Assembly (NCBI RefSeq): GCF_006345805.1 | Contig: NC_042998.1 | Span: 155,806,001-155,870,000 of the forward strand | Length of the DNA stretch: 64,000 bases | Direction of reading: 5' to 3' | From: Octopus sinensis | Lineage: Eukaryota | Part shown: positions 3,411-55,438 of the stretch, one piece after another | How the letters are laid out: each line of letters opens with the position of its first letter | Position numbering within the stretch: position 1 is the stretch's first letter | Translations under genes and position numbers: made by a program | The notes under the pieces: model-generated | Told to the model about the DNA's origin: nothing | The model's database searches: none | The model's input: only the letters and a program-made list of their open reading frames with translations

Positions 3411-3662
3411 AATAAATTTACTTGAAATTTTAAGTTGTTTCCATTATTTTGTCCAACCCCTGTATGCACATCCTTTCCTTTAATAAATATATCATAAAAT
3501 ATCTTCGAGTTTCGTTCCAGTTTACACCACAAGCAGCCCAACTTAATCCATAATCTTACACCATAATACGGCGACAATGGTGCCCAACACACTTCGCGAC
3601 AACCTCTTAACACTTAACAAAGAGAAAACTATACATATCCGGTCGATGCATTTTGTGTACTG

Positions 3663-4437: not shown

Positions 4438-4762
4438 CACTTTGATATCGTATGGGGTCCCTTGATCTTTGAGGTGCCCTACATGGCTGGCCAGGTATAT
4501 GACGAATCGTCTTTCAGGGACCCTGAATGAAGATCTGACCCTGAGCCAATCCTAAACCCTGAGCCAACCAGAGATGCACCAATAATGTGAACACAGTCAA
4601 CACTTAAGCCTGGAAATACATTGGATCAGCCGGTACGGCATTCAAGCGATGCCTGTACAACCTCAGGTTTTCATTCAGGGTCCCTGAAAGACAATTCGTC
4701 ATATACCTGGCCAGTCATGTAGGGCACCTCAAAGATTAATGGACCCCATACGATATCAAGTG
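4438..4762. mobile_element. MITE-like foldback element with ~88-bp TIRs
   Basis: 4444-4531 and ~4669-4757 are inverted repeats (GATATCGTATGGGGTCC...GGACCCCATACGATATC) with a few mismatches. Confidence 0.8.
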
Positions 4763-5540
4763 GATGATCTTAGAACGGCCAGACTCCTACATCAATAAGA
4801 AAGCTTCGGCTTTCGTGGGTGTGAAACCATTGGATAAAGATTAAGATAGTTATGACCGTTTATTATGTTACCCAGGATTCTGTGTGCATAAAACTCTTGG
4901 CTTCATAACGTCTCATCAGACCCCAATGGCCGGTGGCCAATAACCTCTCTTGAAAATGGAGGAAGAAAAGGCCTCGTGGTTAGTTATTGAACACACAAAA
5001 GAGAAACGTCGAGCGCGGGGATTTGCCTCCCTTAGACTATCCACCCAGTCAGCTTGCGGATCCCAAAATTTCAGTAGGAAACGCCTGAAGTGTAAGCAGG
5101 GTCCGAAGGGTTCCATCCTGGAATCTAAGATTTCCGTGGGTCAAGTAAGTTCTTTAATATTATCGCCCGTTCCGCTATGCACAGCTTCCAACGCTTGCTC
5201 TTGTTGATGTAGGGACCCGGTTTTCTAGGATCTTCTATGCGATTAGAAGTGGAGTCCCTTCGTCTTTCAGGCGCCATACGTAGATGGACAAGGACGCATT
5301 ATCATTAGCGATGGTGCTGCTGCTATTTCTGCTATAGTTATTGGCGTTGCCATTCCTGCTATTAGAGTCAGATATCTCAGCCTCGTAAACGAGAAAAAAT
5401 AGAAGAGAGAGAGAGAAAAAAACACGTCCGGTCTTTTGAACGTCCGTGCAGGAAAAGAAAGCTGGACGATGGTCACATGTGAACAACGAGAGAGAGCAAA
5501 AGAGAAAGAGAGGGGAGAGACAGATAGAAAACGGTGAAAG

Positions 5541-6559: not shown

Positions 6560-8100
6560 TCCGTTGTGAGCTGCTAGGTTGTAGTGTTGTTCAACGTGAG
6601 CGCCAACGCGAGAGAAGAGAACAGGTTGCTTAATACATTTCCATAAATAGATGTTGCTCACAATAGCCTCGCTGTGGTCTCGCGCGTGGCAAACATGGTT
6701 GTAGGCGAGATCTCGTTCTTGTCTCGGACCTGGCAATGGCCGCCGGCGAGATCTCGTACAAAATAGCGCTGGCTTCTTGTGTCACGCTACAGGGGCTCTC
6801 CGCTGAGAACGCCAGTGCGAAAATTAGAATGACTGGAGCATGCACAAGAAAGCAAAGATGGCCACCGATCATAAACAACAAGATGTGGTACAAAATATAA
6901 GGCAAAATGTGAAATTGAGAAAAAAATAATCACAGGCAATATATAAGGAGCGTGCACAAAATGTTATTTTACAGAGTTCAATGACAAGGCATTAGTACTG
7001 TTCAGCACACGAGAAACAATTGTCTATCACAGGAAGAAAAAGGAAAAAATTAGATGTAAATAGTTTTAGTGAGTTTTTTGGGGCCAATGCACAGTGTGGC
7101 CTGTCCTGGTGACATAGGGTTTGTTCGTGTTAGGTAGTGGCGATGAAGGTGGAGGTGTTGGTGATGGTCAAAGGTGCGTGTGCAGGTGAATGTGTAGGTG
7201 GTTGTAAAGGATCAAACGCGGGCGTGGTTGGGGTGTCCTCGAAGGGTGTGGACACCTCAAAATTTGTCCTTTTAAGTCTGTCGACCGACACGGTCTCTGC
7301 CCGACCATTGATTTCGAGACTAAAAGTTTTGGGTGTGCGTGATAACACACGAAATGGTCCCTTATAAGGAGAAACGAGAGGTCCTTTGACAGAATCATCG
7401 CGAATAAAAACGTGAATCCATTTGTCAATGTCCGGTGAGACGTGAGAGGGAATAGACTGGTCATGTGGATGCATGGGTGGAATACTTGAGAAATACGAGC
7501 GAAGTCTGGTGACATACGACGTTGGATCAGGACGCGATGAATTGTCTGGCGCCAACATTCATTGTACCAGGGAGTGCCAGAATGGTACCGTAAAGGAGCT
7601 CAGCAGAGGAGAAACCTAAATCTGTTTTAACAGCAGCGCGACAACCAAGAAGAACGATAGGGAGAAATTCTGTCCAAGACTGTGAATCAGGAGTGGCGAT
7701 AACAGCAGCTTTCAGTTGCCTGTGAAAACGTTCAACCATCCCGTTGGAAGCTGGTCGTGCAAATGTGATGAACGTCTAGGATTCGTGACAATTCACGAAA
7801 TAAGGAAGCTTCGAACTGGCATCCACGATCAGTAGTTATTTTAACTAGGACACCAAAGCGAGCAATCCAGTTAGAAACGAAAGCTCGAGCATCTGACTCA
7901 GCGGAAATGTCCACTATTGGAATGGCTTCAGGCCAACGAGAGAAACGATTGACGCATGTCAACATGTAAGAGAACCCGTGACTGACAAGCCATGGTCCAA
8001 TCAGATCAATGTGGACATGGCGAAAACGAGTCTCCAGCGGAGAAAACTGTCCAAGAGGAGCGCGAATGTGCCTGTAGACTTTAGAACGCTGGCATTTCAC
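6560..8100 (-). mobile_element. 3' fragment of a CsRn1-clade Ty3/Gypsy element (integrase, 3' UTR, PPT, start of 3' LTR)
   Basis: Integrase [35 protein letters not shown] is homologous to 52213-53292. On the minus strand a purine tract AGCGGAGAGCCCC precedes TGTAGCG at 6791. The left LTR boundary is uncertain. Confidence 0.85.
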
Positions 8101-8420: not shown

Positions 8421-10885
8421 ATGGAAAATTTACCGCATCCAAAAGACCTAGACTTTAATCAGGAAAATCTAGCCGCCGCATGGAAAAAGTGGAAAAAAGA
8501 ATTCAATCTCTTTTTGATAGCAACAGAAAGTGACATGAAGCCAGACCAAGTAAAAACTTCAATGTTTTTAACTTGCATCGGTTCCAAAGGCCGAGACATC
8601 CATTCCACTCTGGATTTCGATTCATCCGACGAAGAAATGAACCTTCAAACAGTAATCGAAAAATTCGATGCATATTGTGAACCCAGGAAAAACATAACTT
8701 TCCTGAGACACAAATTCTTCACATGTGGACAAGCGGAACATCAAAAATTCGATGAGTACGTGGTAGAGTTGCGCCAAAAGGCACAACAGTGCGAATTCGG
8801 CAACCTCACAGACAGTCTCACCAAAGATATTCTGATATGTTGAATCAGAGACATGAGATTAAGAGAAAGACTATTGAGAGAACCAAATTTAGACTTACAA
8901 AAAACAATTCAAGCAGGTCAGAGTGCAGAGCAAACACGACTCCAATCAAAGATGCTGAATGCCACATCCGAAACAAGAGATAACGAAATCTCGAGGGTAT
9001 ATAGTCAACACGACAGAAAAGGCGCCAAAACTCAAATAACTCGCCATATGCAATCCAGACATCAAAACGAACAAGGCGGAAGTGACAGAAAGCCTGCGAA
9101 GTTTCAAGCGCCAAGTCAACACTACGTCACTAACTGTCACTATTGTGGTTATAATCACAAAAGAAATAAATGCCCAGCATTCCACAAGACATGTGAAAAA
9201 TGCAAGAAACAAGGACACTATGCAAAAATGTGCAAATCAAGAAAATTTGTACATAAAGTAGAGATACATACCGACGATGAATCAGATGACGATACACATG
9301 CACTCGAAATGATCACTGCAAATAATTCCCGCGTGCACAAAATCGAAAAGTTCAAGACTCCAAAAGACATTTGGACGGTCGAACTAAAAGTGAACAACTC
9401 GAATGTAACATTCAAAATTGATAATGGAGCAGACGTAACCGTACTGCCATTCAGAGAATATAGAAATATAATTCCAAAACCACAACTGCAAAAAACCTCA
9501 ACTCGATTATCAGCTTACAATAACACAGCTATAAAAGTGCTAGAAAAATGCACAGCAGTCATTAAATACAAAGAATTATAAAAACAAATAAAATTCATTG
9601 TTGCAAAAACCAACTCGCACGCAGTTATAGATGCAAAGACAGCTAAAGATCTGAACCTAATTAAGAGAATTTCAAAAATAAACTCGTCGAACACAAACGA
9701 CATAATAGAAAAATATGAAGACTGTTTCGGGGAAATCGGCACTTTGTCAATAACACATCATATCACAGTGGATCCACAAATAACTCCTGTAATTCATCCA
9801 CCAAGATCGGTTCCTTTTTCTATAAAAGAAAAACTCAACAAAGAATTAAAAAGAATGACAGAATTAGGTATCATAAAACCTGTTAGTGAACCTACAGACT
9901 GGGTAAATTCCCTAGTCATCGTTGAAAAAGCCAACGGAAAACTCCGACTCTGTTTAGACCCCAAGAATCTAAACAAAGCCATAAAAAGGCAACATTTCAA
10001 ACTCCCTACAGCGGAGGACATTTTTGCACAAATGCATAACCCTAAATATTTTTCGAAACTCGATGCATCTAATGGATACTGGCAAATTCCAGTTGACGAA
10101 GAAAGCTTCCATCTGTTAACGTTCAACACACCTTTTGGAAGGTATCGCTTCACACGACTACCCTTTGGAATTCACAGCGCCAGTGAAGTTTTCCAAAAAG
10201 AAATTGCAAAAATAATAGAAGGTATAGAAGGAGCAAGAAATTCACAGGATAACATCATAATCTGGTCCAGCACTTTAGAAGAACACACAAATCAACAAGT
10301 TTTCGATCGAATCCGAAAGCACGGATTAAAGTTAAATAAATCAAAGTGTATCTTCTATGAATCACAAATCACGTACCTTGGACATCTATTAACCAGCGAA
10401 GGGATAAAACAAGATCCAACCAAAGTACAAGCAATCATTCACATGCCACTGCCAACAAGTAAAAAAGAATTACAAAGATTCCTAGGTATGACAAATTACC
10501 TATGTAAATTTTTATCTAATTACTCCGAAGTTACAGCACCATTACGCCAGCTTCTACAGAGTGACACGTTATGGTCATTCGACAAACCACAAATCGAAGC
10601 AATAAAAAAGCTAAAAGAAATGATTACCAGAAAACCAGTGCTACAATTTTATAATCCAGATCTACCAATAAAAATAACTACAGATGCTAGTAAGCATGGG
10701 CTCTGAGCGATACTTGAGCAGAAACACAACGAAAGATGGCTACCTGTTTCGTTTGCATCTCGTGCAACAACTCAAGCAGAACAAAACTACTGTCCGATAG
10801 AGAGCGAAGCTCTCAGTATAGTTTTCGCATGCAAGAAATTTCATCAGTTTATATACGGAACTCATTTCAGAATTGTAAATAAGGA
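8421..10885 (+). pseudogene. gag-pol: Single-frame gag-pol with in-frame stops at 8841, 9579 and 10704
   Basis: ORF segments 8397, 8853 and 9744 share one frame. Mag-type CHYCGYNHKRNKC and CEKCKKQGHYAKMC knuckles, protease KIDNGAD, RT LDASNGYWQ and SQDNII (degenerate YxDD), RNase H TDAS. Confidence 0.9.
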
Positions 10886-12329: not shown

Positions 12330-12530
12330 TCTGTGACATCTCTATTCGATCTATTGGTAAAATAGACGTTAGAAGGGTCAAGCGGCAAAGATATTATTCT
12401 GCTTTAGCGATGGCATATGGCAAATATAACTGCTGTCACTCACAGAAAAACTATTGTTTTAACGTGAGAAAAGTGGTATTGAAACTTAGCGATCGAGGAT
12501 CGAATCCATGCTATGCCTGCATGAAGCCAC
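12330..12530 (-). mobile_element. Old tRNA-headed SINE-like repeat, family E
   Basis: Shares GGTCAAG(C/T)GGCAAAGATATTATTCTGCT..AGCGATGGC..CTGTCACTCA.AGAAAAACTATTG with 29350-29575, 34490-34600 and (inverted) 34850-35000. B-box-like GGATTCGATCC on the minus strand. Confidence 0.6.
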
Positions 12531-12670
12531 TACACATAATGTGTCAGTTGGAAAAGAGAAGAGACACAACCGAGTAGAAGGCTTAGAGAACATATATTCA
12601 TATATTTACATGCATCTCTGTGGGTTGTGCGTTTGCTGTTAACCATGGTAAGCGTATATAGAATTACTCC

Positions 12671-12949
12671 TGTGGGATGACGTCAGCAGCTGGGTGCGTT
12701 GACCGGAAGCTGGGGCAACCGGAAGGGGAAGCTGTGAGGCGTGCGCAGGCAGGGGTCAATTGGGCTTTTTCCAACGTGGGTCGTGCAGGTGACAAGACGT
12801 GTGCGGACGTCGCTAAGGGCTTGGGCTAGCAGCTGCTATCGTTAGTGTTCGGGTCGGGGCTGTGTCGAAGGACTAGTTAGCACTGGAGGGTCTCCGTCAC
12901 GAGGAAGAGAAGGTAGGTGCCTTTATATTCAAATCGCGCACACACCACA
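12671..12949 (+). repeat. 5' LTR of the compact element
   Basis: Direct repeat of 16422-16700; contains TGACGTCA at 12678-12685. Confidence 0.97.
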
Positions 12950-12961
12950 AGCTATTTCGGC
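12950..12961 (+). promoter_or_regulatory. Putative atypical PBS complementary to nt 1-12 of tRNA-Phe(GAA)
   Basis: AGCTATTTCGGC is the reverse complement of GCCGAAATAGCT, the 5' end of metazoan tRNA-Phe. It sits immediately after the LTR-terminal CA. Confidence 0.7.
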
Positions 12962-13002
12962 CGTTCTTAAACATTTACATTTCAACACGATTCGTCGCCA
13001 CG

Positions 13003-13767
13003 ATGTCTGCAAAAATTAGGATCGCCAGCGACGTCGTCAAACCTTTTAATGGCGAAGGCGATGTAGTGGCCTGGATTCGCAAAATCAGGCTGGTGGCAAG
13101 ACTGCAAGGTATAAGCGATGTGGCGAGTCTTATGGCGCTGTATTTAGAAGGGAGCGCCTTAACGCTATACCGAGAGATGGATGAAGAGGAACGGCTCAGC
13201 GAGGAGAACATAGAGCGACGCTTGCGGGATGCCTACACGGAATGCGAATACACAGCTTTTGCTAAGCTAGGTGCAATCAGGTGGACGGGAGGCCAAGTGG
13301 ATGACTATGCATCAGAAGTTAGAAGGTTAGCGACTCTGGCTGGGTTTGCGGGAGAAGGGCTGGAGAGAGCAGCCCGGCTGGCGTTTGTGAATGGGTTCCC
13401 CGACGATGTAGGGATTCACCTACAACGACTGCCCGGGATTAAAAAGATGCCGCTGAGCGAACTTGTGGCTCAGGCTCGCGTGTTGACGAGACACTCTGGG
13501 TGGAAGGCGATAGCGATGGCGGTGACGGAGGCGCGTAAAGACGGACGACGTCCCGAGAAAGACGTACAGAAGCTTACCATGCGACGAGAGCGGCCGTTCT
13601 CAGGACGGTGTTTTAGATGCCAGGGACCGCACATGGCGCGGGACTGTACGCAGCCGGGGCCCGTTTGCTATCGATGCAGGCAGACAGGGCACATTGCCCG
13701 TGATTGCGACCAGGGAAACGACCGAGGGGAAATTGCTGCCTCTCGAACTTTCCCTGCAAACGAGTAG
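13003..13767 (+). CDS. gag: Gag with two zinc knuckles (CX2CX3HX4C and CX2CX4HX4C)
   Basis: Intact 254-aa ORF; CFRCQGPHMARDC and CYRCRQTGHIARDC. Confidence 0.9.
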   Translation: MSAKIRIASDVVKPFNGEGDVVAWIRKIRLVARLQGISDVASLMALYLEGSALTLYREMDEEERLSEENIERRLRDAYTECEYTAFAKLGAIRWTGGQVDDYASEVRRLATLAGFAGEGLERAARLAFVNGFPDDVGIHLQRLPGIKKMPLSELVAQARVLTRHSGWKAIAMAVTEARKDGRRPEKDVQKLTMRRERPFSGRCFRCQGPHMARDCTQPGPVCYRCRQTGHIARDCDQGNDRGEIAASRTFPANE

Positions 13768-16400
13768 AGGCGCTATTGGAGACGCTGCCATTGATTGACG
13801 TGGAGGCCGAGGGGAAGACGTTCAAGGCCCTCGTGGATACGGGCTGTACGACCACCCTTGTGACTTCGAGGGTGACGAAGGAATGGAATGGGGTGAGTAG
13901 TGTCCGGGCGGTCGACGGCAGCGAAATCCGTTGCAGAGGCAGCAGCAAGATAGAGATAGTGGTGCGCGGCGCGACGCTAAGGCTGCAGGCAATTGTGGCC
14001 GAACGCGTGATAGATGGAGTTGATGTGGTGATGGGGATGGACGCCATCAACTGCCTCGGTGGCGTCAGTGTTGTGGGAAATTAGGTCACGTTCGGAAGCG
14101 TGGGGGCGTCGTGCACTGCGAGTCAGGATCGCCAGAGAGAGCAGAGCCCCGCGAGGGACTGCCCCGCTTACACCATCGAGGACAAAGACTTTCAGGCGGC
14201 GTTCGATGGTCAGCGGTGGACGATAGAATGGCGATGGAAGGACGAGCCCCCGACGCTGGAAAACAGGGTGAGCTGTTACCAGCATACCCTGAAAGGCCAC
14301 GCCAGGGTCGAGTTTGAAGACGAGGTGGAGAGGTGGATCGAGGAAGGGGTCCTTGTCCCTTGGAAGGAAGAGGTAGCGGGCGGAGTGCTACCCCTGATGG
14401 CGGTGGTGTAGCCTACGAAGGGAAAAGTCAGACCGGTGCTGGACTTCATGGAGCTAAACCAGCACATATCGTGTCACACGGGAGGTGAGGCGACAGACGT
14501 TTGTGGCGAGGCGTTACGTAAGTGGAGACAGTCGACCGAGGCAGCGACGATTGTCGACTTGAGATCGGCATACTTGCAGTTCCATGTGAGCGACAAACTG
14601 TGGCGATATCAGCTGGTGCGGTACAAGGGCCGGACGTACTGTTTAACCAGGCTGGGTTTCGGGCTGAATTCCGCTCCGAAGATCATGGCGGCAGTGCTTA
14701 GGTGCGTCCTAGGGAAAGACGGCAAGATTAGAAAGGCCACCAGCTCCTACATTGACGACATTTTGGTGGACGAAACTGTAGTGCCAGCCGACGAGGTTGT
14801 TAGACATCTGGAGAAGTTCGGACTGATTGCCAAGCCACCGGAGTCGATTGAAGGGGGAGCCGCGCTGGGGCTGAAGCTGCGAAGAGATGGATCGGGTGAA
14901 TTGGTGTTCCGGAGAGGAAATGAAATCCCAGAGCTGAGTTCCAGCGTTAGCAGGAGAGAGCTGTTCTCGGTGTGTGGGAAGTTGGTCGGTCACTACCCGA
15001 TCGCTGGATGGCTGCGCACGGCGTGTAGTTACACCAAGAGATGAGCAGAAGGGGAGAGGTGGGGCGACAAGGTGGGAGAAGGAACGATGGCGATGATGCA
15101 GGAAATCCTAGAGAGGACGAGAGCGGAAGACCCGGTCAGGGGGAACTGGTACGTGCCCAAGATGGAATGCGGGACCGTCTGGTGTGATGCTAGCAGTATA
15201 GCGATAGGGGTGGTGTTGGCAATCGAAGGCGCTGCGGTGGAGGACGCGGCCTGGCTTCGGAAAGCAGATGATTTCAACCACATCAATGTCGCCGAATTAG
15301 ACGCGGTGCTGAAAGGGGTGAACTTGGCCTTGAAATGGGGGCTGCGCACGATTGAAATCCGGACGGATTCGGCCACTGTGCTTGGCTGGGTAGGATCGGT
15401 GATCACCGGTGAAAGGAGAGTGCGGACGAAAGGTGCTGCGGAGATGTTAGTGAAGCGCCGTCTAGGAGTTCTAGGTGAATTGATCGCCGAGTTCGGACTG
15501 AAGCTGAACTGAAGAAACTGCATGCTATGCATCACCTGGGTGTGGACAGGACCCTGTATCTGGCGAAGAAAATTGATGCTGACATCACTAGGAGAAGCAT
15601 CCGGAAGGTGGTCGGGAGCTGCGACAGGTGTCAGTCCATCGACCCTGCTCCGTGTGGGCATGAACAGGGAAGCCTTTCCGTGGAGCAGAACTGGAAAAGG
15701 CTAGCTGTGGATGTGACACACTACCGTCAGTGAATGTACGACTGCGAGCCGGGCCGGCTGGCCATTTGGAGGGAGTTGAGATCGGGCATTGCTGACGAGA
15801 TCGCGCAGATCCTGAACGGGATATTTTTAGAGAGAGGTCCCGTGGAAGAACTACTGATGGACAACGGGGCGGCGTTTCGTTCGGAAGCATTGAGGGTTAT
15901 GCTTGATCGGTGGAATGTGCGACGCTTGTTCAGAGCAGCGTGTAGGCCGAGCGGTAACGGGATCGTGGAGAGGCACCATCGGACAGTCAAGGCCATAGCG
16001 GAAAGAGGGCACATTTCGCCGCTTGAAGCAGTTTTTTGGTACAACTTGTCTCCCCGATCCGGACAAGCTGAGGAATCTGTGCCGAACAAATCGCCGGAGG
16101 GTCACGAAGAAGAGAAGGGACCCGTTCGCATTAAAATAAGGGAGGAAGTCTGGGTCAAGCCACCAAAGGCGCGCTGTACGTCTCAATGGAGCAGAGGAAC
16201 GGTGACGGCGGTCAATTCCAGAAACAACGTATCCGTAGATGGAACACCATGACACGTCTTGGACCTTCGCAGGATTGTCACTTCGACGGACGACGATTCT
16301 GGAGAGGGGGAGAACGAGGTGCCCAGCTTGAGAAGATCTCGACGAGCAAGGCGCTCTCCCGGTTGGATGGTGGACTACGACATGGAGCGGAGAGATTGTG
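13713..16400 (+). pseudogene. pol: pol in the -1 frame relative to gag: protease, RT, RNase H, DDE integrase
   Basis: ALVDTGC protease; RPVLDFMELN, VDLRSAYLQ and YIDD RT; WCDAS, HINVAELDAV and TDS RNase H; HHLG..CDRCQ, VDV, LMDNG and GIVER integrase. Several in-frame stops and deletions. Confidence 0.92.
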
Positions 16401-16421
16401 ATCTTTAAGATCAGGGTGGCG

Positions 16422-16700
16422 TGTGGGATGACGTCAGCAGCTGGGTGCGTTGACCGGAAGCTGAGGCAACCGGAAGGGGAAGCTGTGAGGCGTGCGCAGG
16501 CAGCGGTCTATTGGGCCTTTTCCAACGTGGTTTGTGCAGGTGACAAGACATGTGCGGACGTCGCTAAGGGCTTGGGATAGCAGCTGCTATCGTTAGTGTT
16601 CGGGTCGAGGCTGTGTCGAAGGACTAGTTAGCACTGGAGGGTCTCCGTCACGAGGAAGAGAAGGTAGGTGCCTTTATATTCAAATCGCGCACACACCACA
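16422..16700 (+). repeat. 3' LTR of the compact element
   Basis: Direct repeat of 12671-12949. Confidence 0.97.
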
Positions 16701-16705
16701 ACTCC

Positions 16706-17191
16706 AAACCCAGACGCACCATCAAGTAAAGATTAAGTTCATTTTGGACAAACTACTGTCAAGCAAAAAAAAAAAAAAAAAAAAAAAAACCCTTTAAAAT
16801 ACAATAATGACAAAAGCGCTATACCGAAAAATTTTGAAGTTGGCGAAAACGTGTTTTTTAAAACATACAGATATGGGAAACAATCATGGAAGGATGGTAT
16901 TATTTGTAACAGAATTGGAAAAATGATCTATATGGTAAAAGAAGGCAAAAGATACACCGAGGATAATAATAAAAGATTTGAAGAACCGATAGATTTTATG
17001 TACACTATGTTTGAAGTACCATTACCAGTTAAAACTGATGCACCCTTTCGGAGCAATACTAGAAAGAAGAAATTTCGAGGGCTTTTAATAGTTTCAAAGA
17101 GGAAGTTAATTTTTTAAGAAGGGTAGCTGTGGGGGAGAACTAAAAGAAAATTAACAAATGTGTACACCCACATTCTTCGAGAAATGTATTG
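16706..17191 (+). mobile_element. 3' part of an older K02A2.6-like Gypsy host (integrase C-terminus, PPT, start of 3' LTR at 17128)
   Basis: Joined across the ACTCC TSD it reads SVYRITPNPDAP, then KIKFILDKLL and FEVGENVFFKTYRYGKQSWKDGII. AAGAAGGGTAGC is followed by TGTGGGGG. The LTR continues at 21994-~22284. Confidence 0.75.
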
Positions 17192-17608
17192 TGTTATGTG
17201 TAGTTTCGTTCTAATGGGATAGACAACTCAAATGAAAGCCATTGTTATTGTTTTACGTGTTTATTTACTTTTCATGTTACACGAACTGTCAACATTCGGC
17301 GTAGTGATACATAATTACTTTAGACACAGTTCGTACTGTTGCTAACAAAATAGTGCCAAAAGTGGGGATGTATTCTACATACGTATAACTACGTATACAC
17401 ATAGATATGAATGTGTAACATCCCTTCTTGAAAAAAAATAAAGGGGTCTTTTGGCAGTGAAGACAAATATAAGTAGTCTCCCTTACTCTAATGGATTGTC
17501 AGCGCGTGGTGGCAATCCTGCAGCAGAAACCGTGAGATTATTCTGCCTCTGCTTTGTAATCTAGCTGAATTAGTTACTTATCTTTTCATTTTCTTTTTTT
17601 CCTTTTTT

Positions 17609-20600
17609 TTAACGGTATCGGACCGGTGGCAGAATGTTCTTTCTCCATCTGGTGGATCTTGTGCTTCGCACCGGTGTCTGAGGTGTGTTGCTGGGCTGCT
17701 GATGGGTAGTTGGTGCCCGTTGGGGTGATGATTCTGTGGGCGTTGTCACTGATGCAGCAGGTGTTGTACACGTTGTCCTTGACAGCTTTGGTGTTGGGCG
17801 GATGTGGGCCCTGTTGCGTCTCAGCTGCCTACCAGATTCCGTTTCTATTATATACGATCTTAGAGTTTCAGCTCTACTGACAACCTGTGCTGGAACCCAT
17901 GTTTTAGTTATGGGATCTTGAGTATGCACATGTTGTCCTCCAAGTATCTCAGGTAAGTATTGTGCATGTTTGTTGTAATATTTCTGTGATTTTTCTTGAG
18001 TGGCTGCTAGCTTTTCCCTTGTTTCTTCCTGGTCAATAGGAGGTTGGATCTTAGTTGGCAGGGTAGTTTTGTACTTCCTGCCATTCAGCAATTCTGCTGG
18101 GGATTTCATGTCAGCTCTCAGTGGTGTCGCTCGTAGGGACAGAAGTGCCAGGTGTGGGTCTTCCTTAGTCTCTCGGCATTTGACTAGTGTTCTCTTCACT
18201 GTCTGCACCTGTCTTTCTATAAACCCATGGCCTTTGGGGTAGTGTGGAGATGAGGTTGTAATATAGAACCCATACTCATCGGCTAGCTTTTTAAATTCTT
18301 GCGATGTGAACGGGGTTCCATTGTCACATATGATCTGTTCTGGTATTCCTTGCTCTGCTAGAAGTCCTCGAGCCACTGTAGTGATTGTTTTGGCTCTCAG
18401 GTCTTTCACTTTTATCACAAATGGAAATTTGGAGTAGTAGCAGGCCATTATCAAATACCATTCATAGCTCTCTGTGAACAGATCTACTCCAATAGTTTGC
18501 CATGGCCTTCTTGGGATGTCACTAGATATCATTTCCTCCTTTTGTTGTGAGTTTCTGTACTTTTGACAGTTGTGGCATGTAGAAACTGTCTTTTCTATGT
18601 CTTTGTACATGCCTACCCAATACACTGCTGACTTGGCTCGGAGCTTGCATTTCTCCATTCCTAGATGCTCTTGGTGGATCTTGTCAAGAATCTCTTTTTG
18701 CATTGACTTGGGTATAATTATTCGGGATCCAGCCATCAGGATTCCATTCTCCACTGATATATCATCATGGATGGCCCAATATTCACGAATTAGGGGCTGC
18801 ACCTGATGTCTCTTTTCTGGCCACCCCTGAATCGCCATCTGAGTAAGGAACTGGAGTTCTTCATCTTTGCTGGTCTCCTCTTTGATTTCTGCTAGCTTTG
18901 TGGTTGTTACATTTATAATGTGGTGGACCTTTATGCTTAGTCCTTCCATCTCCTGTTTATCATGTGAGGATAGTCTGGAAAGTGCATCCGCCAATATCAG
19001 GTCTTTTCCTGGCTTGTACCTGATATCATAGTCGTATGTTTGAAGCCTTAACAGTAATCTTTGCAGTCTGGCTGGTGCTTTTGTCAGGTTTTTTCTATGT
19101 ATTTGTTCTAGCGGGTGATGGTCTGTTTCAATATTGAAATGTCTGCCATACAGGTATGTATGGAACTTTTCACATCCATATACTACTGCCAGGAGTTCCC
19201 TTTCAATATTTGCGTACCTTGTCTCTGTGGGTGAGAAAGCTTTTGAGGCATATGCAATGGGTTTACCTTCCTGTATCAGTGCTGCGCCAGCTCCTCTCAT
19301 AGAAGCATCGACTTGGAGTATTATTGGTTTGCGTCTGTCATAGTATTGCAGAGTTGTCTCCTTACTGATGAGATTTTTGATTGTTTTGAAATCCTGTGTG
19401 TGTGAAGCACACCAATCAAACTCTACGTCATCTTTGTTTAGCTCTCGGAGATTTGCAGTGTGATCGGCCAGCTTGGGTATGAAGGCTCCCATGTAGTGAA
19501 TGAGTCCCAGGAAGCTCCTGAGTTCCTTCTTGTCTTTGGGTTCTTTAATGTCTCTGATGGCTTCCACTTTAGCGGGGTCTGGTTTAACTCCCTCTGCAGA
19601 GTATATAATTCCAAAGAATTTGCACTCCTTTGCTTTTATCACACACTTGTCTGCATTGAGTTTGATGCCTGTTTGTCGGGTTTTCTCCATAGCTTCATGT
19701 AAATTGAAGTCATGTGTGGTCTCATCCTTGCCATGCACTTGGATGCCATCTGCTATTCCAATTGCTCCTTGCAGCCTTGGTAGGTCTCATCTATTTGGCA
19801 CTGGAAAACATCTTGGCTTACCTTCAATCCAAATGGGAGTCGGTTGAATCGATATCTGCCAAATGGTGTGTTGAAGGTAGTGAGCATGGATGACTCTTTG
19901 TCTATCTTTACATTCCAGTACCCATTACTGGCATCCAGTTTGCTGAATAATTTGGATCCAGCCAATGATGGTGTGATTTCTTCAAGGGTTGGAATTGGAT
20001 GGTACTCTCTTTTTAATGCCTTGTTCAGGTCCCTTGGGTCGAGGCATATCCGTAGGGTACCATTGGGTTTTTCCTTGATTACAATTGAATTCACCCAGTC
20101 TGTTGGTCGTGTCACTTTGGTGATTATTTCTTTTTTTCCATTGTGTCCAACTCTGTCTTCAGCTTCTCTTTTTGTTCTAGAGGGACACGGCGAGGTGTGT
20201 GAACAATTGGTTTGATATTGGGGTCGACTGTTATATGGTATCGACATTTCACAAAGCACCCGACTGTATCGTCAAAGCATTCAGGGTACATGCTTATCAG
20301 TTGTTCTTTGTTTGTGATTGGTGGTCGGTCTTTGATAGGCATATCTCTGTCAATCCTGCTCGGAGCTGCCTTCACTTCTCCATTGATTGACACAATATTT
20401 AGCTTTTTGCAGGTATTGAGTCCAAGAATTGCTGGTCCTTCTGTTCTTGTGACATAAAAAGAACACTTGATTGTTTTTCCTTTGTGTGTCCCTGTGATTG
20501 TTGTTTTACCCAGTTGTGGAATCCTGGTACCTCCGTACGCACTGAGGATTACATCACTTGGTGTGAGGATTCCTTCTTTGATTTTATCCTCTTTTGTTAT

Positions 20601-21636
20601 GTGTTCTGGGAACATCTTTTTGTAGAGGTTGACAGGCAAAATATCACTCTGGGCTCCAGTGTCAATCTTTAGCCTTAAGTCTATGTTTGTTCGTTTCTTG
20701 CCAGACTTCTTTTGTATTCTTATCGTTGTGTATGCCTCATTTTTTTTTTCTGGTCGTCATTTCCCATCTCATGCACATTTATTGTGCCGACTGTCAAGAA
20801 TTCCTCCTCTGAGGTGTTTTGTTCTTGTTGTTGGGCATGTATATCTCTTCTTCTATTTCCGCTCCTCTTTGAAAATTGGGGCTTGTTTTTCTGGGATTTT
20901 ATTAGCCTACACATTTTTTTCCAGTGGTTGGGTTTTCCACATGCTTTGCAGTGTGTACCGAATGCAGGACATTTCTTCCGGTTATTGAATTCATGTTCTG
21001 TACCACAGTACTGGCATGTTCTTTGTTTGCGGGTATGTTTCGTCATGTGCCTAGATACAATATCTACACTGCTGCCTAGTGAGCTTGTTTGTAAGGTAAG
21101 TGAGGCCATTTGTTTGGTAGTGGCTTCGAATGCTCTTGCAGTGTCTACTGCTATCAACTGGAGAGCGTCCTTACCTATGAGGGATTTCTGAACTTCTTTA
21201 TGAGCACATCCCCATATTAATTGATCAACAATTCTTTCGTCCTTATCTTTGAATTTGCATTTTTCGGCAACATTCTTTAGTCTTGACAGGAAATTGTCAA
21301 TCGTTTCTTGTGGATCTTGTTTCAGGCCCTGGAATTCGTATCTGTGAATTCTATGGTTCGATCTGGGCTCTAGGTGCCTTTCAAATTTCTCTAAAAGTGT
21401 GTCTGAGTTATTGCAATCCGATTCTGACATGTCCCAGCTATTGAATAGGTCTAGACCCTTCTCGCCCGTACATAAAAGGATGTAACTTACCTTTTCATCT
21501 TCAGTTGTGCCTTTCAGGAAACTTTTGAAAGCTAGTTGAGTTTCTGTTTGAATTTCTTAAATGCTTCCATGATATCATCGGAGTCCCAGTTCATGATCGG
21601 ATGTAGATTCACCTGTACGGCGACGGGGGTCGACAT
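17609..21636 (-). pseudogene. gag-pol: Frameshifted gag-pol; the RT-end/RNase H/integrase part (17609-19738, 709 aa) is still open
   Basis: CQYCGTEH..KKC and CKACGKPNHWKKMC knuckles, KIDTGAQ protease, LDASNGYW RT, VDAS and TDH RNase H, HQEHLG..CHNC, GVDLF, CDNG and FIER integrase. Confidence 0.92.
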
Positions 21637-21750
21637 TTTGGATCCTCGTGTATGTGTGTGTCCGAAGACGAAGCGATGTTTTGTTTGTTAAATTTCTGGT
21701 TCGTTGTGTTTCTGTTTTGTTGTAAAGGCACAGTTTCCGATTGATTATTT

Positions 21751-21763
21751 ACCGCTGCCACCA
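21751..21763 (-). promoter_or_regulatory. PBS, tRNA-Leu(AAG/TAG) type
   Basis: TGGTGGCAGCGGT is complementary to ...ACCGCTGCCACCA and lies directly after the 5' LTR. Confidence 0.85.
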
Positions 21764-22279
21764 TGTTATGTGTAGTTTGTGTTCAAATGGGATAGACAAC
21801 TCAAATGAAAGCCATTGTTATTGTTTTACGTGTTTATTTACTTTTCATGTTACACGAACTGTCAACATTCGGCGTAGTGATACATAATTACTTTAGACAC
21901 AGTTCGTACTGTTGCTAACAAAATAGTGCCAAAAGTGGGAATGTATTCTACATACGTATAACTACGTATACACATAGATATGAATGTGTAACATATAGTT
22001 TAAAAGGAAAGATGTGAATTTAACTGATACCCCAGCACGTGGCTGTCAGTGGACTGGACGAGTCTATAAATAGATGAGCGCGTATACATTTGTGGTCAAA
22101 CTATGAGAGCGTTTGTCTCGTTATTGATTTTGCGTTGGAATATTGGATTGTTATTGTGCGAACAGTTATTATAAGATAATCAACTCTTGTTACATTGCAT
22201 ATTATTATACGAACTGTTTTTAAATAATACATATAACTCCTAATAAATGTGTTGAGTGCCCATTCTTTCGTTTGTACAC

Positions 22280-26330: not shown

Positions 26331-26805
26331 CACACACATGTGCACACAGAAAGACAGAAAATGAAAGAGAGAGGGGGGAGAGAGAGGGAGAGATAGGAAT
26401 AACTCGGAAAAATATCCTTAATAGGGAAAACATATCCTGGGTAAACAAAGATAACTTAAGCCAGGGGAGACAACTCTAAAATTTCAGTTTATTAAAATGT
26501 ATTCAATGTAGATTGCAGTGGTGTATTCATAAATCGACTAAAATTTAAGAGTTGTTTTTCTTGAATTTTTTAATAATTATTAGTCACTTAGAAAATGATT
26601 GTCCTCATTACAAAGGGTGTTATTTTATCTAATTAAGATATCTTGACATACTGTATAACATCACTTATATTCCAAACACACTGCTTTCAACTTATCGCAC
26701 AGTAAGTGTCCCTGATGATTTTCCCTGTATTCTTTTGATTTATAGCACCTACCAGCCTACCTGCCTGCATGCCTGCCTGCCTACCTACCTACCTACCTAC
26801 CTGCA

Positions 26806-26871
<66 letters not shown>

Positions 26872-26874
<3 letters not shown>

Positions 26875-26961
26875 AATAAATGAAAGAATGGAGTCGAACG
26901 ACGATTTAACAAAAGGAATTTTGTTAAATCGTCGTTCGACTCCATTCTTTCATTTATTTAT
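26872..26961. repeat. Perfect 43-bp inverted repeat with a GGAA loop
   Basis: Arms 26872-26914 and 26919-26961. Confidence 0.95.
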
Positions 26962-39874: not shown

Positions 39875-40323
39875 TTACCTTTACAAGAAGGATGATTGGC
39901 TTCGTCCTGCTAGCCTTCGATGAAGGCCAACGTGCTAGAACTTCGAAGTTACTCTCACCTCTCTGCTTGTAGAAGTATAATAAATATGTGCTTCACAAAA
40001 TTATTGAGTGATGTTTCAGTTTAATGTTAAATTGTTTTTATTATAACCCAACATAAGGCGGTGAGCTGGCAGAATCTTTAGTACGTCGGATAATGTGAGT
40101 AGTGGCATTTTCTGCTTCTTCACGTTCTCAGTTCAAATTCTGCCGAGGTCGACCTTGCTTTCATACGTACCAGCTGAGTACATGAGTTAATGTAATCCTT
40201 CCCCAAAAATTCACCTTCCCCTAAATTTCAGGCTTTGTACCTTTAGTGGAAAGGATTATAATTAGACATAGAAATATTTACACACACACACACACACATA
40301 TATATAAGTTGGGATGCATGGCG

Positions 40324-40387
<64 letters not shown>

Positions 40388-40607
40388 CGGAGATGTACTC
40401 GCATAGCAAGTAATTTGATCTGAGATCGTGTGCTGAAACGAAAACAATTGCAGCGTGGAAGGTGTTTATAAGCCATTTAAGAAACACACAAAAGCCGTTC
40501 GATTCACTCCAACATTTAAGTTTAATTTGTCAAAATATTTTCGTCGCTAAAATCCGCGACCTGTTCACTGACAAAGTCCGTGCTGCATCTAACACACACA
40601 CACACAC

Positions 40608-42863: not shown

Positions 42864-44749
42864 TTAATTTTTAATGAAGAATCTGTAAAGGAAGTGGAAA
42901 TCTTTAATATAATACTCCTTTTCTTTCTGGTGGACTGATCTTTTCATTTTATTCGTCTTACAAAGGATAAATTTTTCTAAGGGCTGGTTTCAGTTAACCC
43001 TACGAAAATCACAGCAATAATTTCTCAAATAACACCGTGGAAGACGCATGGTAATTTCGAAGGTTGTGTGTATGTGCGTGTGTATAGACAAAAAATATGC
43101 GTGTTCCATGCTGCAAAATACCGTACTTAACTTACACCATATTTCTTCCCAATTTACTATGGTTAAAATACTCGTCATGTGATTATGATTTTCAGTAACT
43201 GAAATGGCATTAATTTTCCAAACTTATTGTCGTGGGCATTATTTAAAAATTTAAATTTATTTCTGCCTGGATGACGCGAGATATGTTTTCTCTTAAAGCG
43301 GACGTACTTGATAAGAGTTGGGAGAAGGAAACAAAATTAAGAATTGTTTTAAAAGAAATTAGTCTTCTATTCTAAAATTTTCCTTCATGATATATCAGAA
43401 CTAGTGCTGATAATTAAAAAAAATCATTCATAAGATTTCATGAAACGCGCAAAACACTCTGATGATGAAGATATTTGTTTAGACTACATGAAATTTCCAT
43501 TGCAGTGAATGTGTTTCTGAGATTCTTTTATGTATTCTACGTTTCATAAACAAGTGGTTCGCATAAAGACATGCAGTAGTTGTTAAGAACAGCCTTAAAC
43601 AGATGGAAATCATTATTGTTCTCATTTCTGAAGGCAATCATTCAATTTTTATTCGCTGACAATTTTTGCGAATACACTATCACTGAAACTAAATATACCT
43701 TTGTTAAATGAAAAATCCCTTTAAAATTGGCTCAAGTCGACCCAATTCTTGTGAGAGAATTTGGCTGGTAGAAACTGAATCTGTTGACTGGACTATATTT
43801 GGAATTCCAAGATCTAAGTCTCATCACTCATTGCGTCACACTGATACGCTGATTCTATATGTGTGTGAAGGCGCGCAACTTAATGATTAAGGTGCTTTGC
43901 TGATAATCATAAGGTCGTGGGTTCGACTTTTTGATCGGGCAACACGTCGTGTCATTGAGCAAGGTGCTTTATTTCACGTTGCAACAGTCTACACGGCCGA
44001 GAGGCCATGAATGTATGCTCTTTGTGGGGAAGGTAGGACACTTGTCGTGCTTATGACGCCCACTGAGGCAGAAACTGGTGTTCACGGCTCTCTTCTTATT
44101 TCCAAACAAAAGCTCTCTCCTTTTCCTTAATGGTACGTATGTCAGCATTGGAAGACCCTTCATTCATAAGATTATCTCCCCTTCTTATATGGAACCAGTC
44201 TCAAATGCCTTCCAGTAATTGTGATCCACACGCTAAAAGCGGTGATACTTTTAATAAATCAAAAATATATACTGTATACCTCTTTTTGACTTTGTTGTTC
44301 ATATACAGGGCACTGGCCACTGGGTTATTTCTCTTAGTCCATTGTTGTTGCATATATACGTAACATATATACATACATATATACATACATTATACATATA
44401 TCTTTTATCTTCTATATTTTACTTGTTTCGGCCATTAGACTGTGGCCATGCTGGGGCATTGAGATGAAGAAATTTTTTTAGTCAAATAAATCGACACCAT
44501 TACTTATTAATCTTAAATCATAGTACTTATTCTATCAGTTTCTTTTTTGCCGAAACGCTAAGTTACGGGGACGTAAACAAACCAATTTCCGTCTACCAAA
44601 TACATTTACAAGGCTTTGGTCGACCCGAGGCTATGGTAGAGGACACTGGCCCAAGGTGTCACGCAGTGGAATTGAACCTGGAATCATGTGGTTGGGAAGC
44701 GATCTTCTTACCACATGCATATCTAAATATATAAACATATATTTGCTTA

Positions 44750-44858
44750 TATGTATGTTTATATGTATGTGTACATACATATGCACGCACGTACGTACGT
44801 ACATACATACGTACATACGTACGTACATACATACGTACATACGTACATACATACATAC

Positions 44859-44889
<31 letters not shown>

Positions 44890-44895
44890 CATACA

Positions 44896-44925
<30 letters not shown>
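44750..44925. repeat. (ACAT)n/(ACGT) microsatellite abutting the LINE 5' end
   Basis: Tetranucleotide array. Confidence 0.9.
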
Positions 44926-44928
<3 letters not shown>

Positions 44929-47556
44929 TTGGAACAAAGAGAATGAATTTAACCAAGATGCTCTGTGACTGGAAGAAATCCGAAAAGTTATTGCTCCTGC
45001 ATTACATCCAAGACATACAACATTGATGGTGAAACTCTTGCAACAGTGATCCAGAAACTCCAGAATGGAAAAGCTCCTGGAAGAGACTTGATTGTAGGAT
45101 ATTGGTACAAGAAACTAACATTCTACTGACCATATCTTATCAATCTGTACCAGCAAGCTTTTATTGGCAACAATAGCATACTACACTGGTTAGCTCTGGC
45201 AGAGAAAATTGATCTCCAAATGCAGGACCACCCACATGGCAAAAAGCTACCAGCCAATTGCATGCCAGAACTTAATGTATAAAATATATGCAGCATGTTT
45301 AAACCTATTCCTCCAGGACCACTGTGAAACCAATAACATTATCACAGAAGAACAAGCAGCTGGGAAGAAGGGAGTCAGGGGATGTGCTGAGCAATTGTTA
45401 ATCAACAAAACTGTGATGTCAGAGGTGTGAGAGCATAGGACGAACCTAGTTTCAATGTGGCTAGACTACAAGAAAACCTTTGACTCTGTTCCCCACTCAT
45501 GATTGCTAGAAGCCCTTCAACTTTCTAAAGTTCCTGTGAGAATAATCAAAGACATAGCTGACCTGACTTCATCTTCGGCCACTATCTTGAAATTAAATAG
45601 AAAGAGTGAATGTATTATCACCGATAGAATACAAAATCGCAAAGGCATATTCCAAGGAGACAGCTTCTCTCTGATGCTGTTTATACTTTCTGTAAACCCC
45701 TTGTCATTCATGTTAAAGGAGTCTGAAGGATATCTCACTGGTTCACAAGGCAACAGAAATACCAAAATTATACACCGTTTCTTTATGGATGACTTGAAAC
45801 TTTATGCAAAGAATATGCATGGGATGAAAAAGAGCCCTGACCTAGTTACAACATCCTCATAGGATGTAGGATTGGAGTTTGGTCAGGATAAATGTTATCA
45901 TATGGTTGTGAAAAGGGGGAAAACTATAAATCAGACTAGTAACATCTCCATTTATGATTTGACTGTTCCCCCTGTATCTGATGAGAAATGTTACAGGTAT
46001 CTAGGGGTGGATGAAAATATATCTTACAATGGCACCTATCACTAAAACACATGTCACTAAAGAATATTACTGCCAAATAAAGAAAATTTGGACCTCAGAA
46101 CTCTCAGCATTCAATAAAACTGGCCCACAATGTGTTTGCAGTGCCAGTACTTATACCAACATTTGGGCTGCTTGATTGCATGCATGATGAGATCTGAGTC
46201 ATTGATGTGAAAACCCGAAAAATACTAACAAACACACATAATTTCCATATAAACAGTGACATAGATTGCCTCTACCTAAAACAAAAACAAGGTGGAAGAG
46301 GCTTAACATCGATCCAAAATGTCTTTAAATGTCGCATCATATCCTTTCAGCAAGATCTTTTGACCACCAAGTGTTGAAGTGCATCCCTTGACCAAGTTTG
46401 CATACATGATGCTGATAACATCATAAGACTTGGAAGGCAGCTCCTTGAGCAACTCTCTTTGTGTGATAACCTAGAATACATATCCAAAGAAGTCACACAA
46501 CTCTACCGCAACGTATCATCAGATGAAAGGATGCGTATATAAGACCAGAAGATTATGCATTGATATGTTACTAGAAAGCTCCGTGATGATAGTAACATCA
46601 ATCATTAAAGCAGTTTATCATGGACCAATAACCGGATTACTACCTCCTACTTTGAAGGGTATGCATTTGCAATCCAAGAACAGGAAATACCAACCAAGTA
46701 CCTGATGCACAAAAGGGATAGATATGCAGGTAAAGCAGTAAAGTGTGACAACCAATGCAGACTCAGTGGAGTTCACACTGAAGATATCACCCACATCATA
46801 AGCAGTTGTCTGAAAATGTCATCACGGTATTATCTACTGATGACACATGATGTTGTAGCTAGGACACTCTATAATAAAATTCATTAGAAGAATAATACCG
46901 AGGACAAAGAAATAAGAACCCACAATATGGTAGAAGCCATAGCCACTCACAATAAAAAGGAATACTGGTGGAATGTACCAGTGAAGACCTCAATAAAATG
47001 TAAGCATAACAGACCTGTTATAATGATTTGGGATAGAGAAGAGAAATCGTGCATAGCAGTGGAAATTAACTGCCCAGTGGATGTTAACATAAAGCAGAAG
47101 ATCAATGAAAATGAGAACACCTATGCTGAACTATTGAGAAGTCTGCAGTTACTCTATCCAGGTTACAAGTTCAGGTTTATACCTGTAATTATTGGGGCCC
47201 TGGGGTATGTAACATACTACCTAAATACCAATCTTGTTAAATTAGGCTTCTCAAAACCAGAAAGGAGAAAGCTAATTTGAAGACTACAGAGCCAATCCAT
47301 CAATGAAACTGTAAAAATCTGTAAAACTTTCCAGAAGTTTATCATTTAAATATATATGAGCATGTCTAGATATGCAATTATATGCATGAGAATACATACA
47401 TAAAACATACAAATCTGCACATATACATACATACAAAAATACCCTGTTGTTGATGTTGAAATTCCAATGAAGTAGCCTTGGATCTAAGTTAGAAACCGGT
47501 TCTTTCTCTAGAGGCAAGAATTCTTGAAATTTACTGCATAATGACATCCATCCATC

Positions 47557-47590
<34 letters not shown>

Positions 47591-47790
47591 CAGATACATA
47601 CATACATACATATATACATACACACATACATACATACATACATACATACATACATACATACATACATACAAACAAACAAAAGTGCTCTGTTGTTGATGTT
47701 GATATTCCAATGAAGGAGCCTTGGATCTAAGTTAGAAACTGGTTCTTTCTCTATTGGCAAGAATCTTGAAATAAACTGATTAATGACATA
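44926..47790 (+). mobile_element. 5'-truncated R4/Dong-type non-LTR retrotransposon (RT plus restriction-like endonuclease), degraded
   Basis: KAPGRDLIVGYWYKK, WLDYKKTFDSVPH, GIFQGDS, FMDDLKLY, CRLSG..EDITHIISSC..HDVVAR, NRP..IWD..VEINCP. Coding ends at 47349; the 3' UTR unit is duplicated. Confidence 0.88.
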
Positions 47791-49951: not shown

Positions 49952-50275
49952 TCTTTATATATATAAAACTGAGAATGTGTGTCTGTCTGTCTGTCTGTCT
50001 TTCAAAATATTCGTGGCGGTCTATAAGGGACGACCCTCTGTTTGTCATACCTAGTAATAGTAAAGTTATCCTAAAGAGAACGCGTAAAAAAAATTAGAAA
50101 ATTCTTCCGTAATTTTAACTACGCCCTTACATGATTTAACCTAAATTCTGAACATTATTCCTCCCCGCCTCTCTTAGAATCTTAATCTTTAACAGGGGTA
50201 TGCTGCCCTCATATCTCTACTTAATTACCTCTATTTCCTTTGACTCAAATTCTAGCTATTCATCTCTCTAACTCC
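49952..50275 (+). mobile_element. 5' end of a second Helitron-like element
   Basis: A|TCTTTATATATATAAAACTGAGAATG followed by (TCTG)n, the same 5' pattern as at 22280. Cut off by the LTR at 50276. Confidence 0.6.
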
Positions 50276-50831
50276 AACGGGAACTCGTTGCTTCTTTACA
50301 CTTTTGGGGTGCAACTTGGGTGCAACACAATTTCCTTTCTTTTTGTTTCTAGAAACTACCAGTCAGGAACTAAAAGCAAGTTTAGAAATATATAATTCTT
50401 TATTCTCTTATACAAAAATGAAACACGATGGTATACTGGTATCCATTCTTACAACAATTCAGCAGCAATAGATAGGTTAAATCCCAAGCGTCTGGGACAG
50501 GAGAATAGGTTGATCACACGTATGAAAATACATCCTTTCTCTTCGATCGCTGTGCCTCAAGTCTTAGCGTCCAGAGACAGCGGAGAAAAATTGGTCTGCA
50601 ACAATCTCGTATGAAAGGCGTTCTGCTACTGCCTGTCTCTCTGTACCCCTTTGTTAAGGGAACCTCCCTCGCCTATCAACTAATGCCACATCAGCATTTC
50701 CTTCTTCAGTGCTTCGCGCATGCGCGAGAGGGCACTTCCCTTCTGCCTTTCCAGAAGGCTCCAAACCCGCACACGCACACTGAAGAGGACGTTGCGCGCG
50801 CGCACTGTTGTATAACGTCACTACAAAAGCT

Positions 50832-51996: not shown

Positions 51997-52212
51997 CAAA
52001 AGCTCCCCCTCGAGTGCGTAAGCACGAAACAAAATTCCTTGTAGTGACTTTAAAACTCAAGGTGGATACCAGATAACCAAAATAGCACACAATATAACAA
52101 ATCAAGGCAGAATTTACAATATAAACAAGAATGCACCGAAAGGAAAAAGGAGAAAAAAAATACTCAAATGAACAAAGTTCAATAAGTATTGTAACTGTCA
52201 CAATTGAGAATG

Positions 52213-55200: not shown

Positions 55201-55438
55201 CAAGGCGTAAAGAGATCTGAACGAATGTGGCTATTGGTGACGAATCAATAGCGTGCAATGTAACGTTAGATCGTTTTGGCCTGTCGGTTGTGAGACGCAA
55301 AGGCCAAATGCTGCAACAAGGACCAGTGTCCACCATGAAGTTTTTCTTCGACACTTGATCCTTGACGAAAAATGCACGATAACTAGAAAATGATGTGGAG
55401 GAAGTTGACGTGCTCAAATTCTCCGAAGCTAGTTTAAA
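52213..55438 (-). pseudogene. pol: pol (PR, RT, RNase H, integrase); one frameshift near 55000 and an in-frame TGA at 53323
   Basis: FMVDTG, SPWASPLHLV, VDLIRAYHQ, YVDD, VDAS, TDH, HSLSH..CLRC, LDLVG, TDRG, MVER. 30-bp repeats encode [10 protein letters not shown] near the C-terminus. Confidence 0.95.

Follow-up and report, generated by a model that had tools for sequence, protein, structure and literature searches.

The choice and making of the primer is a defining step in the life cycle of retroelements, and few solutions are known: the 3' end of a tRNA, a tRNA half, and self-priming. In the canonical mode of retroviruses, Ty1, Ty3 and gypsy, a host tRNA pairs beside U5 through its 3'-CCA end. 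Non-3' priming by tRNAs has been described from internal tRNA regions, not from the 5' terminus (PMC4139406, Candida review; PMC8515867, ICTV Pseudoviridae profile). The sites of copia, Ty5 and the Candida Tca-type elements complement an internal part (anticodon stem-loop, ~39-nt fragment) of initiator tRNA-Met or tRNA-Arg. In the self-priming element Tf1, the site pairs with the first 11 nt of the element's own RNA, which is cut by RNase H between nt 11 and 12 (PMC7175516). In addition, fungal GalEa copia elements carry a conserved non-canonical motif at the primer position, the mechanism of which is unknown (PMC5445492).

An LTR retrotransposon in a 64,000-nt stretch of Octopus sinensis DNA (the window, i.e. 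the whole stretch that was analysed) and its relatives were compared with these systems. Directly after the 5' LTR they carry a 12-nt complement of the 5' end of tRNA-Phe. As in canonical priming, a host tRNA would thus pair beside U5; however, the opposite tRNA end is matched, a TGG is lacking, the duplex would comprise 12 bp rather than up to 18, and cleavage of the tRNA would be needed. With copia, Ty5 and the Candida Tca-type elements (Hemivirus-style) the putative mechanism would share the use of the 5' portion of a cleaved host tRNA in place of the 3' CCA. Those elements belong to Ty1/copia and encode integrase before reverse transcriptase (RT), whereas the present site complements nt 1-12 of tRNA-Phe, the inferred cut lies in the D stem and the order is protease (PR), RT, RNase H (RH), integrase (IN). 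Their criterion, a complement to an internal tRNA region, was not met, as no 7-mer match to tRNA-Phe nt 13-76 recurs. Tf1/Tf2 of Schizosaccharomyces pombe and other self-priming Ty3/gypsy elements are similar in that a short duplex, of 11 nt in Tf1 and 12 nt in the present case, involves the extreme 5' end of an RNA and lies flush with U5. Tf1 releases its primer by endonucleolytic cleavage immediately behind the duplex, a step that is inferred here and with which the geometry is compatible. Plus-strand copying of the primer terminates in Tf1, as it would here, at a natural RNA 5' end. In contrast, the partner of Tf1 is its own transcript, while the partner sequence here is a host tRNA-Phe, so that priming would act in trans; moreover, the pol of the present family is not Ty3-like. 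The GalEa motif is a palindrome without a tRNA match, whereas the site described here is non-palindromic and matches a tRNA 5' end exactly.

The window element and the sequence following its 5' LTR

The element spans 4,030 bp of the + strand and contains gag, a broken pol and a polypurine tract. It is flanked by the target-site duplication ACTCC (12666-12670 and 16701-16705) and bounded by a 5' LTR of 279 nt (TGTGGG...CCACA, 12671-12949) and a 3' LTR (TG...CA, 16422-16700), which are direct repeats with ~97% identity. The gag ORF (13003-13767) is open and encodes 254 aa with two CCHC zinc knuckles. Pfam matches to PR, RT, DUF7047, RNase H and integrase identified pol (13704-16252), which lies in the -1 frame relative to gag behind a -1 frameshift signal (13713-13754) composed of the slippery heptamer G GGA AAC (13713-13719) and a stem-loop, GGGAAA...TTTCCC (13727-13754). 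The pol of this copy carries four in-frame stops, which end at 14084, 14411, 15044 and 15733, and one frameshift in the region of 15512-15527. A short G-rich polypurine tract, GGGTGGCG (16414-16421), adjoins the 3' LTR and is present as GGGGGGCG or AGAGGGCG in relatives. A preliminary description had called the element complete; this held for the LTRs, the target-site duplication, the ends and the polypurine tract and failed for the coding capacity, pol being broken.

The first base after the LTR-terminal CA opens the 12-mer AGCTATTTCGGC (12950-12961), which was assigned as primer-binding site from its sequence. No other match to it was found in the window with up to one mismatch allowed. Its reverse complement, GCCGAAATAGCT, is identical at 12 of 12 positions to nt 1-12 of human and Drosophila tRNA-Phe(GAA), the 5' ends of which were taken from a forward primer for the human tRNA (GCCGAAATAGCTCAGTTGGGAG; PMC10505166) and from a 5' probe for the Drosophila tRNA (GCTCTCCCAACTGAGCTATTTCGGC; PMC7038984). 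Insect and human tRNA-Phe both start with GCCGAAA. Given ~50 tRNA families, a sequence at one fixed position would agree with nt 1-12 of some family at all 12 positions with a probability of ~3e-6. The paired stretch would comprise the acceptor strand, U8, A9 and three bases of the D stem. Because the next tRNA bases, nt 13-15 (CAG), are not complementary to ACA at the end of the LTR, the duplex would terminate at the LTR edge and be exactly 12 bp long. A TGG-type site was absent after the LTR of the window element and of every member read. The preliminary description had stated that the 12 nt directly following the LTR CA are an exact complement of tRNA-Phe nt 1-12, that pairing ends at the LTR edge and that metazoan tRNA-Phe(GAA) begins with the corresponding sequence. 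All three statements held, the last for human and Drosophila only, the gene of the host being unread.

A tRNA or tRNA-like gene at the site itself was considered and rejected: ARAGORN detected no tRNA gene anywhere in the window, and a search against Rfam gave nothing at E<=1 within 12400-17000. The tRNA-Phe of the window host therefore could not be read from this DNA.

Relatives, classification and conservation of the site

For the window gag, 35 homologues with 38-51% identity were obtained. The intact pol of one gag relative had at least 670 relatives at E<1e-5, and a gag profile retrieved 321 clusters (50% identity) at E<=1e-30. Among the sources with a species name are Petrolisthes manimaculis, Oratosquilla oratoria, Argonauta hians and Aplysia californica; among IMG/VR viral contigs no further relatives were found. 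DNA was examined for 12 relative proteins, mostly on contigs of ~4.0-4.5 kb with intact gag (237-280 aa) and pol (913-990 aa), the latter in L003, L004, L007, L012 and L014. Two full genomic copies were obtained. The copy of A. californica (L136; GCA_000002075.2) has LTRs at 3418-3631 and 7436-7649 that are 99% identical and the target-site duplication GATCA, and that of P. manimaculis (L137; GCA_034508575.1) has LTRs at 4700-4973 and 8639-8912 that are 100% identical and the duplication TAAAC. At the gag-pol overlap of L003, L004, L007, L009 and L012 the -1 frameshift signal is kept as G GGA AAC, or a close variant, with a GC-rich stem-loop. The family is a large one of compact (~4 kb) gag-pol LTR retrotransposons of marine invertebrates, with members in molluscs and crustaceans.

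The criteria for an LTR retrotransposon of the Ortervirales type were met by direct TG...CA LTRs with a short target-site duplication (window, Aplysia, Petrolisthes), a zinc-knuckle gag, and a pol with protease, RT, RNase H and integrase (Pfam) that is intact in relatives. The order PR-RT-RH-IN fits that of Ty3/gypsy (Metaviridae), and Ty1/copia (Pseudoviridae) is excluded because the integrase is C-terminal. However, pol matched the Pfam entries RVT_3/RNase_H and the DUF7047 'connection', not the Ty3-type RT_RNaseH or RT_RNaseH_2. When the family pol profile was compared with the PDB, the integrase came nearest to those of retroviruses (MMTV IN, 7e-16), HIV-2 and MLV RT were matched at ~1e-6 to 1e-5, and Ty3 was absent among the 60 matches considered. 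An ordinary gypsy RT from the same window matched Ty3 at 1e-65. Signatures of BEL/Pao (Belpaoviridae), namely Peptidase_A17 and associated DUFs, were not found at E<=0.01 in three pol sequences; since no BEL/Pao structure was compared, membership in this group is not strictly excluded. For an intact pol, comparison of an AlphaFold model (pLDDT 75) with BFVD retrieved generic Pol proteins of retroviruses and caulimoviruses, which did not discriminate between clades. The family is therefore placed only as an LTR retroelement; its pol may point to a deep, unnamed lineage of marine invertebrates.

Among lineages whose LTR end could be read, the sequence across the LTR boundary (slash) is ACA/AGCTAT-NNN-GGC in the window copy and in 10 further lineages (11 in total; gag 38-48% identical), with L010 having ATA in place of ACA. 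The 12-mer is thus shown to be a trait of the family and not an accident of the window copy. It occurs in three variants: AGCTATTTCGGC in the window, A. californica L136 and L011; AGCTATCTAGGC in P. manimaculis L137, L003, L007/8, L014, L015 and L010; and AGCTATCGAGGC in L004/5/6 and L012/13. AGCTAT-NNN-GGC is the complement of GCC-NNN-ATAGCT. Read as tRNA, G1, C2 and C3 as well as A7, U8, A9, G10, C11 and U12 are invariant, and the variation is restricted to positions 4-6, halfway along the acceptor stem, which read GAA, UAG or UCG. The 40 nt on each side of the 12-mer are unconserved among lineages. Conservation ends on one side at the LTR edge and on the other at the base opposite tRNA nt 1, the mature 5' terminus generated by RNase P. 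The distance from the 12-mer to the gag ATG ranges from ~10 to ~190 nt among members, which excludes a translation signal. In a gag tree, TAG and TCG sites were mixed within one well-supported clade, and GAA sites were found in a separate clade and in the window copy. Because TAG and TCG are mixed within one clade, the site variant is not simply inherited with the element.

The preliminary description had proposed that the nucleotides after the LTR of other copies should complement tRNA 5' ends, and had hoped for switches between tRNA species. The first point was confirmed in the 10 further lineages, while the second was not seen, switches being limited to variants of the tRNA-Phe acceptor stem. 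It had also named three results that would refute it, an unconserved motif, a TGG primer site deleted from the window copy and a different 5' end of the host tRNA-Phe, none of which was obtained, the last as judged from human and Drosophila tRNA-Phe.

Metagenome contigs were scanned for GCCTMGATAGCTCAG as a source of tRNA genes with the variant 5' ends. At least 120 stretches were obtained, most of them bacterial or archaeal tRNAs. Two matches were tRNA-Phe(GAA) genes of eukaryotic type, in which the D arm (AGCTCAGTTGGGAGAGC) and the anticodon arm (AGACTGAAGATCT) are those of nuclear tRNA-Phe. The gene on contig L029 starts with GCCTAGATAGCTCAG and has a T arm identical to that of Drosophila tRNA-Phe; the contig also carries exons of an SLC12 transporter and is eukaryotic on this ground. 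The gene on contig L103 starts with GCCTCGATAGCTCAG and has a T run (TTTTT) after its end; it contains one acceptor-stem mismatch (U4-C69) and could be either a variant or a pseudogene. The three site variants thus correspond to nt 1-12 of eukaryotic tRNA-Phe variants, with the reservations that the TAG and TCG forms come from environmental contigs and not from hosts and that one of the two genes is possibly a pseudogene. Other eukaryotic tRNAs with TAG or TCG 5' ends are not excluded, given that the scan was partial. Cognate duplexes had calculated energies of -18.7 to -21.4 kcal/mol, compared with -10.4 kcal/mol for a TAG or TCG site with the GAA tRNA. On this reading the P. manimaculis copy with identical LTRs predicts a crab tRNA-Phe starting with GCCTAGA, i.e. 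GCCTAGATAGCT, and GCCGAAATAGCT is the predicted tRNA-Phe start in Aplysia and in the window host; none of these genes has been read. As a separate observation, L103 (1,213-nt metagenome contig) contains, in addition to the tRNA-Phe gene, a second GCCTCGATAGCTCAG stretch without a tRNA fold, possibly a truncated tRNA copy; the two features lie at ~107-121 and 926-998, both on the - strand.

A putative priming mechanism and its rivals

The data show the site and its position, and also that it is conserved, co-varies with known tRNA-Phe 5' variants and has no complement inside the elements. The identity of the 12-mer as a binding site is well supported by these data, while cleavage after nt 12 and priming are inferred, in the absence of any experiment and of small-RNA or cDNA data. 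With this limitation, we favor, by a modest margin, the explanation that these 12 nt next to the 5' LTR serve as primer-binding site for the minus strand and bind the 5' end of host cytoplasmic tRNA-Phe(GAA), which is cut after U12 to prime. In the sequence of events that we infer, the zinc-knuckle Gag would act as a chaperone that opens the acceptor and D stems of tRNA-Phe, allowing nt 1-12 to form a 12-bp RNA duplex with the site, flush with U5. The next step would be cleavage of the tRNA between U12 and C13, for which the RNase H of the element is the most economical candidate in analogy to Tf1, and synthesis into U5 would start from the 3'-OH thereby created on U12. During later plus-strand strong-stop synthesis the 12-nt primer would serve as template up to the natural 5' terminus of the tRNA, by which the site would be regenerated without a modified-base stop. 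Comparison of the leader and U5 with tRNA-Phe nt 13-76 revealed no recurrent complementarity of >=7 nt among members; recruitment of the whole tRNA is therefore without support. The preliminary description had inferred that a 5' fragment of tRNA-Phe ending at about nt 10-12 primes after a specific cleavage, perhaps by RNase H, which is supported by the evidence on the site and remains an inference.

The main rival, which remains possible, accepts that the site binds the tRNA-Phe 5' sequence and holds that the primer is a fragment made beforehand by a host nuclease (D-loop cut, tRF-5a, ~14-16 nt, trimmed) and not cut on the template by the RNase H of the element. It rests on the same sequence evidence as the favored explanation. 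Short 5' tRNA fragments are a known class that is covered by reviews, and the absence of contacts to the tRNA body fits a short fragment. On the other hand, nt 13-15 (CAG) mismatch the LTR end in every member, so that the 3' end of a 14-16-nt fragment would remain unpaired and would first have to be trimmed back to exactly nt 12. To our knowledge, a 12-nt 5' tRNA fragment is not a recognised abundant species.

It is unlikely that the 12-mer is instead a cis element (for packaging, dimerisation or an integrase-proximal function), or binds an unknown RNA ending in ...AUAGCU-3', with a non-functional likeness to tRNA-Phe and another route of priming. In favor of this rival, direct evidence for priming is lacking and the variants were matched to tRNA-Phe genes of unrelated environmental contigs and not of the hosts. 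Against it, the block sits exactly at the primer position of LTR elements without a TGG-type or self-complementary alternative, both of its edges match the tRNA 5' end and the LTR edge, and the three variants are eukaryote-type tRNA-Phe 5' ends. The variable spacing to the gag ATG further speaks against a role in translation.

Tf1-type self-priming, in which the site would pair with the 5' end of the element's own transcript, is suggested by the duplex length (12 versus 11 nt) and by the position flush with U5. It is very unlikely and already contradicted by the sequences: in 10 elements tested, no complement of the site with fewer than two mismatches was found, and matches with two or three mismatches were scattered, none of them in an LTR. 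Self-priming of this type is therefore excluded, and upstream host sequence that supplies the complement to transcripts cannot be a general solution. Finally, a chance match or a degenerate copy that has lost its TGG site, which the age of the window copy (LTRs ~97% identical) and its broken pol might suggest, is all but excluded, since the same site is found in a copy whose LTRs are identical and in many others in which gag and pol are intact, and since the chance is ~3e-6.

Beyond the favored explanation, priming by tRNA-Phe cut after U12, a bolder reading can be formulated, toward which we lean slightly to the negative. It states that a large and widespread mollusc and crustacean family primes from nt 1-12 of host tRNA-Phe, cut in trans by its own RNase H, and also appears to represent a deep lineage outside Ty3/gypsy, BEL/Pao and copia with a retrovirus-like integrase and RNase H. 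A primer site for a tRNA 5' end, or this family, was not found described in open-access full text, including searches with the exact site strings; older or paywalled papers and Repbase notes were outside this search. The statement of the preliminary description that no such system is described thus met no counterexample in the open-access literature searched. The kind of element, a tRNA-primed LTR retroelement, is already known; the chance that its mode of priming is new is fair.

The bolder reading would imply a third way of priming by tRNAs, in addition to the 3'-CCA end and the anticodon-arm half, and the missing link between tRNA priming and the self-priming of Tf1. If tRNA-Phe priming as favored here is true, it would add a new solution to the few known ones and indicate that the 'cut to prime' chemistry of Tf1 can work on a host RNA in trans. 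It would explain why no primer-binding site is called for these elements, since standard annotation tools seek only complements of tRNA 3' ends. Furthermore, the site should track the acceptor stem of the host tRNA-Phe, and tRNA-Phe cut after U12 would be a natural substrate for biochemistry. A further question would be whether such elements can be restricted by 5' tRNA fragments in the way that 3' fragments restrict ordinary ones.

Additional features of the family and of the window

A splice-donor-like sequence, AAGGTAGGT (AAG/GTAGGT, 12910-12918), lies inside the 5' LTR of the window element, ~40 nt before the LTR end. An AG/GTRAGT-like motif was also observed 38-78 nt before the LTR end in most relatives, namely in eight of them (L136, L011, L003, L007, L014, L015, L004 and L012). 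A function of this motif as a route to pol was rejected, as gag and pol are joined by a classical -1 frameshift signal and a spliced pol mRNA is thus not needed. U1 binding or control of polyadenylation are conceivable and remain a guess.

Just 5' of the polypurine tract, the window element contains the palindrome TGATCTTTAAGATCA (16399-16413), which is kept as TGATCTTGAGATCA in relatives. The arrangement of TGATCTT(N)AGATCA directly 5' of the G-rich polypurine tract and the LTR start TGTGG was observed in one half of the family (window, 16399-16421; L136, 7414-7435; L137, 8617-8638; also L003, L007, L009 and L011), and the palindrome was not found by the same search in the clade of L004, L012, L014 and L015. 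It might be a determinant of plus-strand priming, although folding z-scores were weak.

The window as a whole is a nest of retroelements. Two ordinary Ty3/gypsy elements (Pfam) were identified on the - strand. The first (17208-21994) has the primer-binding site TGGTGGCAGCGGTAAA at 21748-21763 (-), and the second (~50271-56900) has TGGTGACCCCGACGTG at 56583-56598 (-), which we take to be a tRNA-Trp-type primer site. According to the preliminary description, three other elements have ordinary 3'-CCA sites; this held for these two, both with TGG sites, which thereby serve as internal controls. In addition, a gypsy pol remnant at 8853-10706 (+) and a non-LTR element with endonuclease and RT at 58198-60722 (-) were observed. 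Many long microsatellite-like arrays with a periodicity of 8-12 nt are spread over the window (26732-26890, 40204-40430, 44700-44970, 47494-47730, 61015-61290 and others), and similar arrays flank the A. californica copy in L136.
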